A stretch of 64,000 bases of DNA from Chara braunii (Eukaryota > Plantae > Charophyceae): positions 3,447,532 through 3,511,531 of the forward strand of contig BFEA01000022.1 of the NCBI GenBank assembly GCA_003427395.1, written 5' to 3'. The notes beneath the pieces are model-generated. The model ran no database searches. It was not told the origin of the DNA and was given only the letters and a program-made list of their open reading frames with translations. Position numbers and translations under genes: made by a program. Of this stretch, positions 13,747-61,363 are shown piece after piece (within the stretch, counting starts at the first letter, position 1; every line of letters starts with the position of its first letter).

Positions 13747-14300
13747 TGCCGGTGCAAATACCCTTACAAGGGTATTCGCCCTAGTTTTTGCAAGCGACAG
13801 AAAATAAGTTTGGTTTAAAGGTTAAATATAACGCGCGAGGGCGAGGCGGTGTCTATGGTTTACGTTAGGCTGGATGGTTGACTAAAGCAAAGAGTGTGTG
13901 GGCGCGCAGGCTTGAGGCGCGCGTGATTTTATTTGTTGATGATTGAAGAACTGGCGTGACCGCCGACCATATTTTTATTTCTGATTAAACTAGGATTGAA
14001 AAGATTTATGTCTCGTTGATTGATGTGTTTGCCTGTGACATATGCGTACGTGCGGAGGACGATATCGACAACAACATAAATTTTCAAAACATCTCGGTAG
14101 GTCTACGCGTCGCGCAGTATCCGTTTATTTAAGTGTCTGTCAGAACTCGACCCATCCTTGGGCCTATCACTATTGGTTACAGAATCGGAGTTCCACCCGA
14201 GAGATTCAGGGATCGAAGCCAGCGGACAGCGACCCGTGCATTAGAGCAGCGATAAGGAACCGATGGGTTGAGGGTCCGACGAGGGCATCCCACATGGGTT
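13747..14300 (+). repeat. LTR-like dispersed repeat, paralogous to 50955-51500
   Basis: Colinear similarity starting abruptly at TG(C/T)CGGTGC(A/G)AATACCCTTACAAGGGTAT. Confidence 0.85.
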
Positions 14301-15627
14301 GCTGCGCGTAGGTTAGCTCGGAGGGGCCAAGGAAATTTAGTAGTCCCCTTTACCTTTCCTCGCCGTACGTTTTTCCCTGTTGGTTTTTTCTGGTTATTAT
14401 TTTATTATTATTTTTACTACTATTATTTTTTTGTGGGACGAGGTGTCGGAGCAAATACCCTGACAAGGGTATTTTCCAGGGTTTTTCAACGCCAGACGCT
14501 GTCCGACTTTTTCGCTTAATTGAAGGACTTGATGAGACTGATGTTTGTCAAAAGTCTATTCAGACCAGACCTACGACTAAGAATCTGAAATATTCTTGCC
14601 TAACCTTGAACGTCTGCGACCCACCGAAAAGACGGCGAGGGTCAGCGGTATGGCCAGTCACGTGTCATGTTCAGCACGGTCGCAGGGATGTGTGACCATT
14701 GGCATACTAAATCTGAATTTATTGTACTGAAAACGATGAGCCTATGGTGTTAAATAAGAATCGTCGTCCAAGGGTTGGAATCACGACGATGGTCGAAGGA
14801 CCCAAAAACCTGCTTACTAAGAGTTGGAGGCCGTTGCGGTAGGTGCAGACGGCCAACAAAAGGGGTTGGGCAAGGCAGGTTGGGCCTGCTGATTATAGGC
14901 TGGGCCTACTTGGAGCTGCACCTCTACATATAGAAGAGGTACAGATCTAACTCCCGTAATAGGAGCTAGCCCAGTAGGTTACGACGCTAGACTTTCGCCC
15001 AGCAGATATTGGGATCGAGCCCGAACGCACGGCCCAACTGGGCTAGCTTTTTTTTGGAGCTGCCCGTTGGGGTTGGAGGCGCGGTCGATTTCGACCGCGA
15101 GATCTCGAGATCTCACGGTCGAAAACGACCACGCAGATACTGCATGGCCGCTGCGCAAGGATGACACGCATAAATCGAGAGATGGCCGAAATTGTTTTTT
15201 TTCGATTCCTTAGGGAATCGAACTCCGGCTTGTACATCAACAGGAGGGGGAAGGAGGAATGCCAGCAAGGCTGGCATAGGCTGCAACGGTCGTTGGCTTA
15301 TGCCAAATGCATTTCTAAAAAAAAATACTAAAATTATCTACAGTGCCAGATGGCGCTTCCAGAAGAAAAGGGACTTAGTGTCCCAAAGGAAGAAACAGGC
15401 GCCCATTGAAAACGGGTAGCCGATTTTAGGTAGGTTAGTTTTTGTTTTTTCTGATTTTTTTTCTATTTCTAGATTTTTTTTTAGCTTCTTTTAGAATCTA
15501 GCCGAGCGCCCGTTCGTTTTTAAAACGGGCAGCAGGGCAAGGGAGCGCCTGAACCCGGTGCTTATAGCGCCTGGGTACAGGCGCACGAGAAAGGGAAAAA
15601 TGGGGGGGGGAAGGAATGATTGTGCCA

Positions 15628-15681
15628 GACTGTTTCGTCGGGATTGCACCGACTCGTCAGGGGGTTGCAACCCCGACAGTC
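15628..15681 (-). ncRNA. Type III hammerhead ribozyme, intact
   Basis: Minus strand reads GACUGUC / GGGG UUGCAA CCCC / CUGACGA / GUCGG UGCAAUC CCGAC / GAAACAGUC: all core nucleotides present, three perfect stems, GUC triplet. Confidence 0.93.
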
Positions 15682-15752
15682 AGTCACTCCGCCTGAACAT
15701 GGCGCTGAAGGCGCACATGAAGAGAGAGAGGGGAGGCAACGGGACTGCGACA

Positions 15753-15805
15753 GAATGTTTCGTCGGAATTGCACCGACTCATCAGTAGGTTGAACCTTGA
15801 CAATC
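15753..15805 (-). ncRNA. Type III hammerhead ribozyme, core intact with two stem mismatches
   Basis: Minus strand reads GAUUGUC / AAGG UUCAA CCUA / CUGAUGA / GUCGG UGCAAUU CCGAC / GAAACAUUC. Confidence 0.88.
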
Positions 15806-15856
15806 AGCCTCTGCGCCTGAACCCGGCGCCGATAGCGTCTAGGTTCAGGCACAGAG

Positions 15857-15861
<5 letters not shown>

Positions 15862-15927
<66 letters not shown>

Positions 15928-15960
15928 GAAGGGTACCTACCTACCTACCTACCTACTTAC
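15862..15960. repeat. (GA)n followed by (ACCT)n microsatellite
   Basis: Directly visible. Confidence 0.95.
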
Positions 15961-17769
15961 CTGGTTGGCCCCTCGTCGAAGACTCCAACAACAGGATGAG
16001 CAAAATCGAATGAATCTTGCACTAGAACATGGAAATATACACCCCCACATGTTGTCTTTCCTCCCCCCTCAGTCGAATTCAGGGTCTGAGCCCGTTCATT
16101 CGACGAAACAGGCAGCAGACTGAACTTCAGGTAAGTTTTTTTTTTTTTTTTTTTAGTTTTTTTTTTCCCTTCCCCATTTTGTGGCCATTAGACAGCAGAA
16201 TATGGGGGAAAACGGGAAAAGGGGCAGAAACGAGGCAACTGCCTCGTGAAAAACTATAAAAAAAAATAATAAATAAATATATATATATATATAGATATAT
16301 ATATATTGTCACAGAACTATTCACTAAGACCACAAGCACGTGAAGTAGAAGGAGAAATAAGATGAGCAAAGAAAGGAAAATGAAAGGATAGACAGACAAA
16401 GAGACAGACAAACCAGAATGACACAGAACAATGTCCTCTTATTCTTCGTTTCACTGTATCCTGAAGAAAGGATAAAATAAAAAACAAAAGCACATTGAAA
16501 TCATTCAGTTTCTCACTCTTCTTAACGCCTCATCCACCGTGCCTCTAACGTACGCGGCTCGCCACGTTGATGAAGTTGAGCGCGAGCTGCCCTCATCCCC
16601 GTATGCCATAACAGCCCACTTGCACGCTATGGGAAAGAGGCAGAGTGAAGAAAGAGGTGTTAAACACAAGGAAGAGAGGAGCATATATATAGTCTTTTCG
16701 ACTGTATGGGAGCAAGAAAGACTCCCACCTCAGTTTTGAGACGAGTGACTGGGGTCGCGAGATCTCAGATCTCGTGGCTCACAACGCACGTGTGGGGGAG
16801 ATGGAGAGAAAAGGGGAGAGAGAGGGAAACGAGGTGGTTGGGAGAAGGAGGACCTACTCCTCCCAACTTGACAACTGTCCTCCCCGTTTTCAGGGGAGGG
16901 CAGCAGAGGGAAGGAGTAGGTTGTTAACAGATAACTGCATGCTCCTGGCTCAAATCACGGCCAGGAGCATTGCAATTGAGGAGGTTGGGGTTTTTATTTT
17001 TATTTTTTTATTATTATTTTTTTTATTTTTATTTTTTTTGTGAGGAGACTTGTCCTCACGTGGTGCTAGCTCTGGCAGAAGTTGCCAGAGGTAACTATCA
17101 GGCTCCCGTTTTTTAAGGGAGCCTGGAAATTGAAGGGTCACTAAGGAAAAGGCTAGGTACAACCTTTTCCCCGATGTATCTGCCCTAGGAAAAGAGCCTA
17201 GATACATCAAACTGTAAGGGGTAGTATCTCTCCAACCCCTTACCAGAAAAATAAAAGAAAAACAGATTTACAAATGGCAGGAGCCCAGCTATCTCGTGAG
17301 ATTCCGAGATAGCTGGGAAAAAGAAAAAGAAAAAGAAAAAGAAAAAAGGGCAATTAAAGAAACTTCCCCACACTAAGGTTGTGGTTGTGGTGCGGTCACA
17401 GTCAACCCTGGATCCTGACCAGATCAAGGGCTCACAGTGAGCCCGCGATTTTTGCCTGGGGGCTGGAGTGACGTCCAACCCTCCTCAGCCACTATAAAAC
17501 AGACAGCTGCCCCACGAGCACACTTGAGTGCTGCTGGGGAGCTGAGGTGCTGCCTAGAGACTTCGAGGAGGAAGCTGGAGACCTTCAGAGGAGCGCGAGG
17601 AGAGGAGTTGGGCAGCCATAGCCAAGGCAGGGAGCACTCTGCTCTCCCCGCTTCTGGCTGGTGCTGGTCCCACGGGACGGACCCAGGGACGTGGCAAGGC
17701 TACGGCAGTGCGGCAAAGTGGAATTTGGGCCTGGAGCCCAAATTTTACTAATTTTGGCCTGCCATTTTT

Positions 17770-18170
17770 CCAGTGCTGCCAAAATTTTACATCGTCAGGG
17801 CGGCGGCGACGCGAGTTTTACGGCGGTAGTACGAAAGTGCTGCCAAAATTATGCGGCGGCGACGCGGGTTTTACGGCGGTGGTACGGAGGTGCTGCCGAA
17901 TTTCTGCGGCAGCGGCACTAAGTTTTCCGAAGGTGGTACGGAGGTGCTGCCGAATTTCTGCGGCGGCGGCACTAAGTTTTACGGCGGTGGTACGAAAGTG
18001 CTGCCGAATTTCTGCGGCAGCGGCACTAAGTTTTATGGCGGTAGTGCGGAAGCACTGCCGAATTTCTGCGGCGGCGGCACTAAGTTTTACGACGGTGGTG
18101 TGGAAGCGCTGTCGAATTTCTGTGGCGGCGACACTAAGTTTTACAGCAGTAGTGCGGAAGCGCTGAATTT
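17770..18170. repeat. 54-bp tandem minisatellite, about 7 copies
   Basis: Unit GTGCTGCCGAATTTCTGCGGCGGCGGCACTAAGTTTTACGGCGGTGGTACGGAG; shows as 18-aa periodicity in several ORF frames. Confidence 0.95.
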
Positions 18171-30279: not shown

Positions 30280-31125
30280 TGACAAAGCAGGAAGAAAGAC
30301 ATACAACTAAGCAGGGGGGCAGCATAGCAGCTGAGGAGCGTAGACAAGGGGGTAGTCCCCACATTCGGCACAGACCAAAGCAATCCATCACCTACTCCCG
30401 CCACAAGTTGAACCCTGCAGACTGTTGGCTCCCACCACCTGCTGAGCCAGGAAGACACTCTGATGAACGTCTGTCATCAGCCGCACAGACATACCGGACA
30501 GGGAGCCCCCCAACCCCCTCATAGCACAGTAGAAATTCCAAAGAAGGAACCACTTACAAGCTCAGACTTGGAAAAAGCAGGAAGAAATCCGAAGAAAGAC
30601 ATACAAGCAAGTGGGTGGGCAGCACAGCAGCAGAGGATTGCAGCCAAGGCAGTCCACACCTTCGACATGGGCCAAAGCAATCATTATCTACTCCCACCAC
30701 AAGTCGAACCCCGCAGACTGTTGGTTCCGACCACCCGCTGATCCAGGAAGACACTCTGATGAACGTCCATCATCAACCCCACACACATGCCAAAAAGAGC
30801 ATGTATGTCTTTAAGTACTTCTGTGGGCCCTTTTAGCCTATGGGTCGGTGCAACTCCGATGAAACAACATCTCATCATCAGGTTTTATGTTTTCTGCAGT
30901 TTTGTCTTTCATACTTGCGCTTTCCTTGCCTGATGCTTGTTTTCTTTTCCTTGCCTTGTGTGCTTTTGTCTTGTCTGACCTCTTGGCACCCCTGTGCCGT
31001 GCAGCCTATGTGTTGCCTCCATGCTTTTGCCTTGCAGTTTTTTTTACCCGCCTGCTTCTTTTCTGCTGCTTGTTCTCTTTTCACTGCCTGTTTGTTGCTA
31101 GAAATACTGTGTTTGCTTGTGTGTT
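30280..31125. mobile_element. Hammerhead-associated repeat related to 46030-47500; left arm inverted and tandemly duplicated (about 300 bp)
   Basis: 30290-30480 resembles 30590-30780 and the reverse complement of about 46126-46215; 30900-31120 resembles 46800-47450 (CAGCCTATGTGTTGCCTC). Confidence 0.6.
30838..30868 (+). ncRNA. Decayed hammerhead remnant (stem II plus GAAAC only)
   Basis: GTCGGTGCAACTCCGATGAAACAA matches the family; the CUGANGA box is corrupted (CTATGG). Confidence 0.6.
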
Positions 31126-46029: not shown

Positions 46030-47500
46030 CCTAGGGGGGCCGCTCGGTTCGGTATGGCTGTCCGTCCTACGAGTGACGACAGATTTCGTCGGAGCGACTC
46101 CATGGCTCAGTGGGTGATGTGAGCGGGTGATGTGCCGGTTTGGTTTGTGTTGGATGTATGGGCTGCCTCTTCTGCAGTCTGCCGCTGCCTTGCTGCCCGT
46201 TCCGCTTGCTTTGCAGGTCATTCTTGGCAAGCTGCTGTGTTTGCTGTGTGTTGAGGCCGTGTGGTTGGTGTTCCCTTGCGCTTCGCTGCTTCACTGCCTT
46301 GCTGCCTATCTGCAGGCTGTGCTGTGCCTTATGTGTCCTTTGCGTGCTTGCCTTGTAGTTTGGTGGCCTTGCTGGTGTTGCCTCATGCTTTGCTGCTCCA
46401 CTTGCCCTGTTGTTCCTTGCAGTTGCTCCGGCAGTGTTGCCTGGTGCTTCACTGAGTGGGGTTGCTTGCTGCCATGTGTGTGCCTGCCTTGTTGGTGCTT
46501 GTTCGTGTTGCCCTGTGCTTCACTGCGCGGTTGCCGCGCTGCGCGGTTGCTTGCCATGTCATTCCTTGCAGTAGTCTTCGGCGTTGAGTAGCCATATTGC
46601 ATCTGCAGCGTTGCCTGGTGCTTCACTGGGTTGCTGCCCGCTGCTGTGTTCCGTTTGGGGACAGTCTTCCTTCAACAAGGGTCAAAGGGTGCATGACCCA
46701 AACCATCAATACGGGGATTCCGCAGATTGTCGAGGGTTCAGCCTCCTGATGAGTCGGTGCAACTCTGACAAAACAATCTTCCATCCGTTCCGTCTAGCCT
46801 ATTTCATTCATTGTCTTTACCTGCCTTGTGTGCTTGTATGTTGTCTGTCCTCCTGCCTCCCCCAGCGCCCTCCAGCCTATGTCGTGTGTTCTCTTTCCCC
46901 CCCGCCTGCCTTCCCCAATGCCACCCAGCCTATGTGCTGTGAGGTCATTTCTTACCTGCTGCTTGTTGTCTTTTCCTTGTCTTGTATGTTGGTGTGTTGA
47001 CTGCTTGACTCTTGTTTTAGGTTTGTGAGTCTGTTTTGAAGTGACCACTCTAGCCTACCATCGAGTCAAAACAGTGCTGCATCCCTATAGACTAAGACTG
47101 TTGGTGTGTCGTCTGAATGCCCGCCCCCCCCAATGCCATCCAGCCTATGTTACTTGTTGTCTTTTCCCTGCCATGTGTGCTTGTATGTTGCCTGCCCTCC
47201 TGCCTCCCCCAATGCACTCCAGCCCATGTTGCTTGTTGTATTTCCCTGCCTTGTGTGCTTGTAGGTTGTCTGCCCTCCAGCCTGTGCCACTTGTTGTCCT
47301 TTCCCTGCCCTGTGTGCTTGTATGTTGTCTGCCCGCCCAACTTCCCTAATGCCCTCCAGCCTATGTGTTGCCTCACTGCTTTCCTTTCTTGCCTTTTGTC
47401 TGGTCATTTCTTACCTGCAGGCTGCTGCTTGTTGTTTTTTCCTCCCTTGTGTGGCGGTGTGTTGACTGTATCCAATAGAGTAAGTAGGTGCACGATGAGG
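46030..47500. mobile_element. Hammerhead-associated non-coding repeat with TG/CT-rich degenerate tandem arms
   Basis: Hammerhead at 46724 and a remnant at 46077; recurrent units CCAGCCTATGT and CCTTGTGTGCTTGTATGTTG; related to 30280-31125. Confidence 0.6.
46724..46779 (+). ncRNA. Type III hammerhead ribozyme, probably inactivated (GAAA to AAAA)
   Basis: AGAUUGUC / GAGG GUUCAG CCUC / CUGAUGA / GUCGG UGCAACU CUGAC / AAAACAAUCU. Confidence 0.87.
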
Positions 47501-50954: not shown

Positions 50955-51716
50955 TGTCGGTGCGAATACCCTTACAAGGGTATCCACCCTGGTTTTCGCA
51001 AGCGACAAAAGATAGGTTTGGTTTAAAGTTTAGGTGTTCTGCGCGAGGCGCGGCTGTGTCTGAGGTTTACGTTGACTGGCTGACTAGATTAAAGAGTGTG
51101 TGGGCGCGCGGATTTGAGGCACGAGTGATCTTTTACTTTTTTTTATGATTGTGAAAGTCGGCGTGGTTGCCGGCGGATTTTTCTTCTGATTAAGCTAGGA
51201 TTAAAAAGGATTCCGTCTCTTGATTGGTGCGCTTGCCGGTGACCTATGCGTACGTGTGGAGAACGACATCGACAACGACGTGAGTTTGGGGACGTTTCGA
51301 TAGATCTAAGTGTTGTGCAGTACCCCTTTACTTTAGATATCAGACAATACTAGACTCAGATTTGGGGCCTACCATTATTAGTTACAGCATCGAACTTTCT
51401 TCGGAGGGATTCAAAGATCGAGATCGAGCGGCGAAGGCGCGGGAGCGTGGGAGCGGCGCTGATGAATCGAGGGGTTGAGGGCAAGGAAGGGCTATCCCCC
51501 TTGGTTTTGTCGTCGTCGGCGACGAAACGGTACTAACGGCCTCTTTTTCCTCGTTCGTCATATGCTAATGATTAAAATCTTCTAAAAGTTTTATTATGTA
51601 TTGTCGTTGTTTATTATTTTTTATGTTTCGGCGTGCTTTGAATCAAAGGCGTGACGCCGGATTTCGAGGCCGTCATCGGGATTGATGGGTCGGCTCAGGT
51701 GGCGTGAGCTCTGACA
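50955..51716 (+). repeat. LTR-like repeat, paralogous to 13747-14300
   Basis: Starts TGTCGGTGC, candidate end GCTCTGACA (imperfect inverted ends); no TSD seen. Confidence 0.65.
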
Positions 51717-60968: not shown

Positions 60969-61363
60969 CCGTAGGCAGAGAGAGAGAAGAGGACAACAAA
61001 CGAGGGGTTGTGACAAACTGTTTCGTCGGAGTTTCACCGACTCATCAGGAGGCTGAACCCTCAACAGTCTACAAAATCCCCTCACTGATTACACTGTAAA
61101 TGATAATCTACCTCAACCAAAATCAAAGTAGACTATCACTCACCCACACCATATGGAAAACTCTACGGACTGTCGGGTCATACCCCATCACAAGCCAGCA
61201 AAACATCCACGAAACAAAGAAAGGTCTGTCACAGCCAAAAAATACACTCCAGACACGCCACTGACACTAGAGGCACAACATGGCCGTCTAGTAACGGCCC
61301 CGACCACTGCCGCTCGACCTGACCGGAAAAAAACCGTAGCAGGAAGCTAGGGAAGTTGTAGCA
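60969..61363 (-). mobile_element. Hammerhead-bearing insertion within a (TA)n tract
   Basis: Flanked by TA runs; absent from the paralogous site near 25370. Confidence 0.7.
61015..61070 (-). ncRNA. Type III hammerhead ribozyme with GUU triplet
   Basis: Minus strand reads AGACUGUU / GAGG GUUCAG CCUC / CUGAUGA / GUCGG UGAAACU CCGAC / GAAACAGUUU. Confidence 0.9.

Follow-up and report, generated by a model that had tools for sequence, protein, structure and literature searches.

Two type III hammerhead ribozyme motifs, spaced 124 nt apart on the minus strand, are arranged head to tail in the Chara braunii DNA that we analysed, a stretch of 64 000 nt referred to here as the window. We consider it probable that a compact, non-coding type III hammerhead retroelement is present here as a head-to-tail array that is old and has diverged, and that this element belongs to a superfamily of C. 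braunii hammerhead retroposons. The array would be made up of two complete units and a terminal hairpin of 41 nt, and the superfamily would comprise retroposons associated with microsatellites. In its present state, the locus is most likely a relic.

Hammerhead_3 (RF00008) was the best, and the only, ribozyme family to match the array. The downstream motif, HH2 (15627–15682, minus strand), scored 47.3 bits, with an E value of 2.5e-9 for a stretch of 561 nt and 2.9e-7 for the whole window; the upstream motif, HH1 (15752–15806, minus strand), scored 39.9 bits (3.1e-7 for the 561 nt stretch and 3.6e-5 for the whole window). The whole-window E values exclude chance for both matches. The earlier note on this DNA had placed a minus-strand hammerhead in two units and proposed a search with Rfam Hammerhead_3, and both ribozymes were indeed matched at full length (model positions 1–54), just below the gathering score of 48.5 bits. 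A default Rfam gathering scan therefore lists neither of them, and they are seen under an E-value threshold. A covariance model built from five hammerhead copies (R1) gave 84.4 bits for HH2 and 76.1 bits for HH1, and a 29 nt pattern of the core and stem II had four matches in the window, compared with none in 100 shuffles.

The cores of HH1 and HH2 are intact, with the sequence CUGA(C/U)GA ... GAAA and a GUC site. Stems I and II are closed by loops and stem III is open, which identifies the fold as type III. Cleavage is predicted at 15799|15798 for HH1 and at 15675|15674 for HH2, in agreement with the positions after GUC, and the 124 nt product, proposed previously. The spacing is exactly 124 nt and, given the type III fold and the head-to-tail order, double cleavage would release an RNA of that length (15675–15798, minus strand). 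It had also been claimed that stems I and III differ between the copies yet still pair. This holds for HH2, in which the core and stems are canonical, and fails for HH1, where stem I is mismatched (A.A) at its base (1.1–2.1) and stem III contains U.U mismatches. The description of the locus as type III, tandem and non-LTR was borne out: the topology is that of RF00008, no LTR-like repeats were found at the array, no tRNA-Met primer binding site (PBS) was matched within ~24 kb of it, and there is neither an ORF of note nor gene context around it. A tRNA-like or SINE origin of the array was rejected, as ARAGORN found nothing.

Read along the minus strand from 15923 to 15545, the array consists of (CT)31, a hairpin, HH1, a linker with a CT tract, a second hairpin, HH2, a linker with a pyrimidine tract, and a third hairpin. 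A pure (AG)31/(CT)31 microsatellite (15862–15923; TRF, 31 copies, 100% match) bounds the array at its 5′ end as read on the ribozyme strand. This repeat either served as a target or grew out of the CT tract of a partial unit. The 3′ side of the array carries only a pyrimidine-rich stretch of 18 nt. All remaining parts are given on the minus strand. GC hairpin 1 (15813–15853, ~41 nt), which lies 5′ of HH1, and GC hairpin 3 (15545–15585, 41 nt), the terminal ‘tail’ of the array, are inverted repeats that share 83% identity and fold at −26.1 kcal/mol (z −4.7) and −26.2 kcal/mol (z −4.8), respectively. GC hairpin 2 (15689–15716) is a shortened form of the other two, and its fold of −9.9 kcal/mol is no better than that of shuffles. 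The pyrimidine tract of unit A (15720–15737) is CT-rich, and that of unit B (15587–15614) contains C9, T5 and CT-rich sequence.

Direct reading of the sequence placed the starts of GCCTGAAC-type units at 15545/15547, 15689/15691 and 15813/15814, each with a GC hairpin followed by a purine tract on the plus strand. This matches the three head-to-tail units that had been reported at about 15547, 15691 and 15814. The units measure 124 and ~144 nt, with indels, and a ribozyme is present in only two of the three (nhmmer, unit profile). The array extends over ~2.5 units, with a start and an end that are arbitrary relative to the unit. A search below 15545 with the unit profile (nhmmer) yielded neither a third ribozyme nor decayed units, only the third hairpin.

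Units A and B are ~80% identical over their best-aligned 91 nt. The differences between them are unevenly distributed, with 2 of 29 positions (7%) differing in the core and stem II and 36 of 96 (~38%) elsewhere (Fisher p 0.001). To judge from this comparison, the units are old or of different descent, and the simplest reading is that they come from lineages that split while ribozyme function was still selected. Alternatively, the conservation of the core and stem II could reflect present or past selection in place at the locus.

Folding was predicted from nearest-neighbour energies, which ignore tertiary contacts and co-transcriptional folding. For HH1, the hammerhead fold (−12.4 kcal/mol) is close to the best fold (−13.0 kcal/mol) and makes up ~5% of the equilibrium ensemble; HH1 is predicted to be marginally stable, with weakened stems I and III. 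The hammerhead fold of HH2 has an energy of −23.5 kcal/mol, and the best fold, at −31.5 kcal/mol, is an alternative hairpin that is ~8 kcal/mol more stable, leaving the hammerhead at ~1e-6 of the equilibrium ensemble. In this hairpin, the cleavage site and the 5′ half of stem I pair with loop 2 and the 3′ half of stem II, a pairing made possible by the UGCA that both loop 1 and loop 2 contain, which renders them complementary to each other (loop–loop duplex, −5.7 kcal/mol). The same complementarity could provide a tertiary kissing contact that aids the active fold or, equally, a toehold for the misfold. The predicted misfold argues against efficient cleavage by HH2. Viroid hammerheads also have more stable alternative folds, yet cut transiently during transcription. 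Given this precedent, HH2 may still be active. For comparison, a related hammerhead at 61 kb in the window has a hammerhead fold of −17.9 kcal/mol and a best fold of −19.2 kcal/mol that is essentially the hammerhead, which accounts for 65% of its ensemble.

The predicted 124 nt product keeps stems I and II together with a long stem, and folds at −36.7 kcal/mol with a z of only −1.3, so it is not unusually structured. The transcript of the whole array is unusually structured (z −5.9), mostly due to its hairpins.

To place the array among related sequences, we used ten pieces of the C. braunii assembly GCA_003427395.1 (L021–L030), chosen via C. braunii proteins, and one Chara-like contig, BFBZ01014625.1 (L004), from a pattern scan of metagenomes; with L004 included, this sample holds 414 kb without N. 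The genome of C. braunii is roughly 1.7 Gb, and at that size the ~480 kb of Chara DNA sampled in total corresponds to ~0.03% of it. Pattern scans of metagenomes and viruses returned mostly type III hammerheads that are unrelated, though with the same core and stem II, and L004 was the only Chara-like sequence among them. In C. braunii itself, relatives are abundant. Covariance model R1 detected 17 copies at E < 1e-5 in 400 kb (the window, L004 and L021–L026), and the nhmmer unit profile gave ~21 hammerhead-family matches in 414 kb, a density of ~1 per 20 kb.

Beyond the array, the window contains a solitary hammerhead at 61015–61070 (minus strand; RF00008, 45.8 bits). It has a GUU site, its minimum free energy structure is the hammerhead fold, and it is a copy of the (TA)n family, with the element ending at (TA)n. 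A second solitary hammerhead, at 46724–46779 (plus strand; 39.1 bits), is 84% identical to HH1 and catalytically dead, with GAAA changed to AAAA. A hammerhead remnant lies at 30822–30866. We considered whether the hammerheads at 30.8 and 46.7 kb could mark the two LTRs of a gypsy element, and rejected this in view of the lack of long LTR-like repeats and of colinearity with L021. Among the coding sequences of the window are a Ty3/gypsy ORF, with 84–94% identity to dozens of C. braunii proteins, and a LINE-type reverse transcriptase (RT) ORF with its best matches in C. braunii.

The hammerhead families end on the 3′ side at (TA)n or (CA)n; the dominant one, the (TA)n family, has a constant 3′ end that adjoins (TA)n. 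The 5′ ends of this family could be resolved in 12 copies. Seven of these begin within −1 to +11 relative to the site of cleavage, directly after a microsatellite, and five reach far upstream. This hot spot at the cut site fits target-primed reverse transcription of ribozyme-cut RNA, and the clustering supports cutting by the ribozyme in vivo before reverse transcription. Stacks of at least two copies in one microsatellite were found at L021:23787-24080, L024:43263-43600, L024:18426-18670 and L028:13419-13790. The core and stem II are conserved in sequence across all of the mobile families. No RT of Penelope-like elements (PLEs) was found beside a related ribozyme in the sampled Chara DNA.

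Rather than being a stand-alone system of a new kind, the array is a diverged, compact relative of these abundant C. braunii hammerhead retroelements, with a similarity of 76–85% that is confined to the ribozyme and linker and begins only at stem III; accordingly placed, the nhmmer family matches begin at position 49 of the unit profile or later. In blastn comparisons, 15721–15796 showed 76–80% identity to 60977–61059 of the window and to many copies in L021 and L024. In unit A, the linker and CT tract show similarity to the (TA)n family (tail alignment z 3.8) and are homologous to its internal CT tract; in unit B, the linker resembles a copy of the (CA)n-inserting family at L022:31147-31206 (tail alignment z 4.2).

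Neither the rest of the window nor the ~480 kb of Chara DNA sampled, itself a very small fraction of the genome, contained a second copy of the GC hairpin module. Its similarity to the 3′-terminal domain of the (TA)n family was not significant, as the score was equalled by 124, 930 and 406 of 1000 shuffles in the three comparisons. A unit colinear from end to end with the 3′ cleavage fragment of the (TA)n family was considered and dropped for this reason. Because the hairpin has no detectable relative, membership of the array in the superfamily rests on the ribozyme and linker. On this sequence evidence, the array is a compact variant in which a hairpin of 27–41 nt stands in place of the ~280 nt 5′ body of the common elements. 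Further copies of the 124 nt unit may well exist, given how small a share of the genome was sampled.

PLEs of the Chlamys type that carry hammerheads presumably copy the superfamily elements in trans. In the mechanism that we propose, each hammerhead in a read-through RNA of the minus strand would fold and cut after GUC, giving pieces with 5′-OH and 2′,3′-cyclic phosphate ends. In live families, target-primed reverse transcription would then use the cut RNA as its template, with pyrimidine or dinucleotide repeats as the targets. Chlamys insertions show a bias towards microsatellites ((CA)n and (C)n), and PLE insertions include partial tandems with a tail of 30–40 bp (PMC8557442). The layout of the array, with two units and a terminal hairpin of 41 nt beside (CT)31, fits this pattern of PLE insertion. 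Our view that the locus is a fossil is based on the structural weakness of HH1, the tendency of HH2 towards a stable misfold and the ~20–38% divergence of the units. Unequal units of 124 and 144 nt with indels, the shortened hairpin 2 and the lack of further units likewise point to a relic.

Two routes to the tandem fit the layout: a Penelope-like insertion, as above, or the stacking of independent insertions. The second route is a possible, if doubtful, account. Pieces of ~107 nt, each containing a hairpin, hammerhead and linker, would have been inserted one after another into a single pyrimidine microsatellite ((CT)n or (C)n), with the CT-rich tracts between them as decayed remnants of the target; the 124 nt spacing would be incidental and would not represent a replicating monomer. 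Hammerhead copies stacked in one microsatellite are common in the Chara sample, and a preference for (CA)n and (C)n is documented for Chlamys elements (PMC8557442). At the locus itself, all three pieces begin with the motif GTGC(G)CC, the linkers of units A and B resemble two different families, and the tracts are unequal (17 nt and CT-rich, 28 nt with C9, and 62 nt of pure (CT)n). In addition, another, unrelated repeat adjoins the other side of the (CT)n/(AG)n run here, and the same arrangement occurs at L021:85643-85785, which suggests that the run was a target. However, the third piece retains the 5′ hairpin without the 3′ ribozyme, an outcome that target-primed reverse transcription, which truncates at the 5′ end, would not yield. 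Unit A has a CT tract that aligns with one internal to the (TA)n family, which is also unfavourable to this route, and the sampled Chara DNA yielded no solitary copy with (CT)n at its flanks.

It is very unlikely that the locus is an active, miniature retrozyme, in which transcription of the minus strand is followed by cutting at both hammerheads, and the 124 nt RNA closes by ligation to a viroid-like circle and is reverse transcribed by rolling circle into new tandems. In favour of this reading, the two type III hammerheads are complete and directly in tandem, and the ~2.5 units, with their arbitrary start and end, would suit rolling-circle copying; conservation of the core and stem II also greatly exceeds that of the rest, and relatives in the genome have apparently been copied from ribozyme-cut RNA. 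Against this, units that are only ~80% alike and unequal in length are a poor fit to rolling-circle copying unless the array is very old. Only two ribozymes are present, with no other copy in the ~480 kb sampled, the stems of HH1 are weak, the alternative hairpin dominates in HH2, and the 124 nt product is not unusually structured (z −1.3). An active 124 nt circle is unlikely on these grounds.

The weakest proposal is that the pair of ribozymes has been domesticated to process a host transcript in cis (for example, an intronic or read-through RNA) and that selection at the locus, unconnected with mobility, maintains it. This proposal can draw on the conservation of the core and stem II against diverged surroundings, but is highly improbable: no gene or ORF context surrounds the array, repeats and microsatellites form a mosaic around it, and the core and stem II are conserved in all of the mobile families, a pattern that needs no local selection if the units descend from different active masters.

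As found, the locus widens the already diverse range of hammerhead retroposon architectures in C. braunii by one that is unusually compact. It is a long shot that it represents a live family of 124 nt ‘mini-retrozymes’, in which tandem type III hammerheads of a streptophyte alga would release and circularize an RNA smaller than any other known self-cleaving circular RNA, with the loop–loop complementarity of HH2 acting as a switch between cleavage and ligation. If true, such a family would bridge the animal non-LTR retrozymes, which are tandem and linked to PLEs, and the plant retrozymes and viroids, which are type III. An active 124 nt unit would be the shortest known ribozyme-bounded mobile RNA and a tandem, non-LTR, type III system in the green lineage, with a bearing on the origin of plant retrozymes and hammerhead viroids.

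The ribozymes of viroids and viroid-like satellite RNAs often occur in both polarities. The hammerhead viroids (Avsunviroidae) and the viroid-like satellite RNAs are RNA replicons of 220–450 nt (PMC8781251). The array resembles the hammerhead viroids in having a type III sequence that is also predicted, in the case of HH2, to adopt a more stable inactive fold. It differs from them in being a DNA locus with a much shorter unit and with ribozymes on one strand only.

In the plant LTR retrozymes, hammerheads lie within LTRs of ~350 bp that flank 600–1000 bp, together with a tRNA-Met PBS and a polypurine tract (PPT), and the elements are mobilized by Gypsy (Cervera et al. 2016, PMC4918200). Common ground with the array includes the type III hammerhead, the streptophyte host and the non-autonomous, non-coding character. 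Unlike the plant elements, the array has no LTR and no PBS, and its ribozyme strand carries a pyrimidine tract rather than a purine tract.

The hammerheads in the non-LTR retrozymes of metazoans are of type I, and in many cases stem III is weak and works as a dimer (PMC7229834; PMC7761336; preprint 10.64898/2026.07.22.740005). The elements form repeats of ~150–300 bp (PMC7761336) in many copies, their circRNAs have been demonstrated, and a link to Penelope-like elements has been proposed (Cervera & de la Pena 2020, PMC7229834; Li et al. 2026). The array likewise consists of non-coding head-to-tail repeats with hammerheads and without LTR, PBS or PPT, and its double cleavage is predicted to give unit-length RNA. 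The contrasts are that the array is type III, is known from DNA alone and comprises two ribozymes at one diverged locus in an algal host. Its unit of 124 nt, rightly singled out in the earlier note as very small, is shorter than the animal repeats (PMC7761336).

Closer parallels are found within C. braunii itself. Two subclades of the Chlamys PLEs of this species carry canonical hammerheads, and that of Chlamys-2_cBra is a 3′ hammerhead (PMC8557442; Craig et al. 2021). By their published description, they share with the array a hammerhead near the 3′ end, a bias towards microsatellites, and partial tandems that end in a short tail. They are autonomous elements of 3–8 kb that encode an RT with or without a GIY-YIG endonuclease (EN) (PMC8557442), whereas the unit of the array is non-coding and 124–144 nt in length. 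The (TA)n and (CA)n retroposons have a near-identical core and stem II, a homologous linker and CT tract, the type III fold and a microsatellite border in common with the array. These elements have units of ~300–400 nt, their young copies are >90% alike, and they are often truncated at the cleavage site; the array has two complete ribozymes, and its copies are old and have diverged. The array is retrozyme-like in function, being non-coding, tandem and bounded by ribozymes, and is best filed with the C. braunii hammerhead retroposons as a compact, diverged variant.

The (TA)n-inserting family, the abundant non-coding type III hammerhead retroposons of C. braunii whose 3' end lies at (TA)n, includes copies that begin close to their own ribozyme. 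Among the 12 copies with resolved 5' ends, seven start at -1 to +11 of the cleavage site, and in copies starting at this site a microsatellite immediately precedes the element. Loci on which this observation is based include L021:23787-24080, L024:18426-18670, L024:43263-43600, L023:5980-6036 and L028:13419-13790, all in other pieces of the assembly. The clustering of 5' starts at the cleavage site suggests that the ribozyme cut the template RNA ahead of reverse transcription. The cleavage triplet in the family consensus is GUU, not GUC. A further copy, truncated within stem II (L024:33283-33337), is fused to sequence carrying a motif (GGATTCGAACCC) that resembles a tRNA T-arm, and this junction may represent a template-switch chimera.

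The ribozyme module itself seems to move between contexts, as the hammerheads at window 46717-46780 (+) and L021:74693-74755 (-) are 90.6% identical over 64 nt, whilst their flanks are unrelated to each other. Ty3/gypsy pol ORFs lie on the same strand, 1.4-3 kb upstream of both hammerheads. Given that neither LTR-like repeats nor colinearity were found for this pair, the gypsy link may be a coincidence in TE-dense DNA. A decayed remnant of the same sub-type as the window 46724-46779 hammerhead was identified at window 30822-30866 (+), where stem II and GAAAC are retained and CUGAUGA is gone. Two weak model matches (window 30415-30464 and 30711-30760) are part of a ~296-nt repeat, which has only a stem III-like motif in common with the hammerhead. 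Elsewhere in the window, we observed a 530-bp dispersed repeat (13747-14274 vs 50955-51481, 74% identity), as well as a local tandem repeat at 17800-18165 whose period is ~54/106 bp.

Small retroposons associated with microsatellites form a mosaic in the 2 kb surrounding the tandem hammerhead array. A repeat family unrelated to the array (window 15878-16041 (+) and L021:85643-85785) adjoins a microsatellite of (AG)n/(CT)n, which lies at the same end of each copy; the family looks like another microsatellite-targeting element, for (CT)n. A non-coding element with a (TA)n end and lacking a hammerhead is present at window 16290-16700 (-) and L024:32998-33131 (85% identity). Approximately 350 bp from the array, a U6 snRNA-like sequence closed by a T run (window 15099-15196 (+)) matched RF00026 at 38.2 bits, below the gathering score of 44; the resemblance lies in the 3' half, and the ACAGAGA region is not conserved. 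Because this 3' half recurs at 84-90% identity in L023:11265-11322, L024:13881-13930 and L025:42551-42602, the sequence may be either a dispersed repeat derived from U6 or a variant gene present in multiple copies.

The pattern of hammerhead core and stem II is matched exactly in many metagenome contigs that are unrelated and whose lengths recur, at ~1.78 kb (L001, L006, L008, L010-L012, L014 and L017) and ~2.47 kb (L002/L015), and in viral-type contigs (L009/L016); the type III hammerhead in two viral-type contigs scored 53.6 bits, above the Rfam threshold. Judged from these matches, the stem II sequence is not Chara-specific, and is widespread among type III hammerheads.
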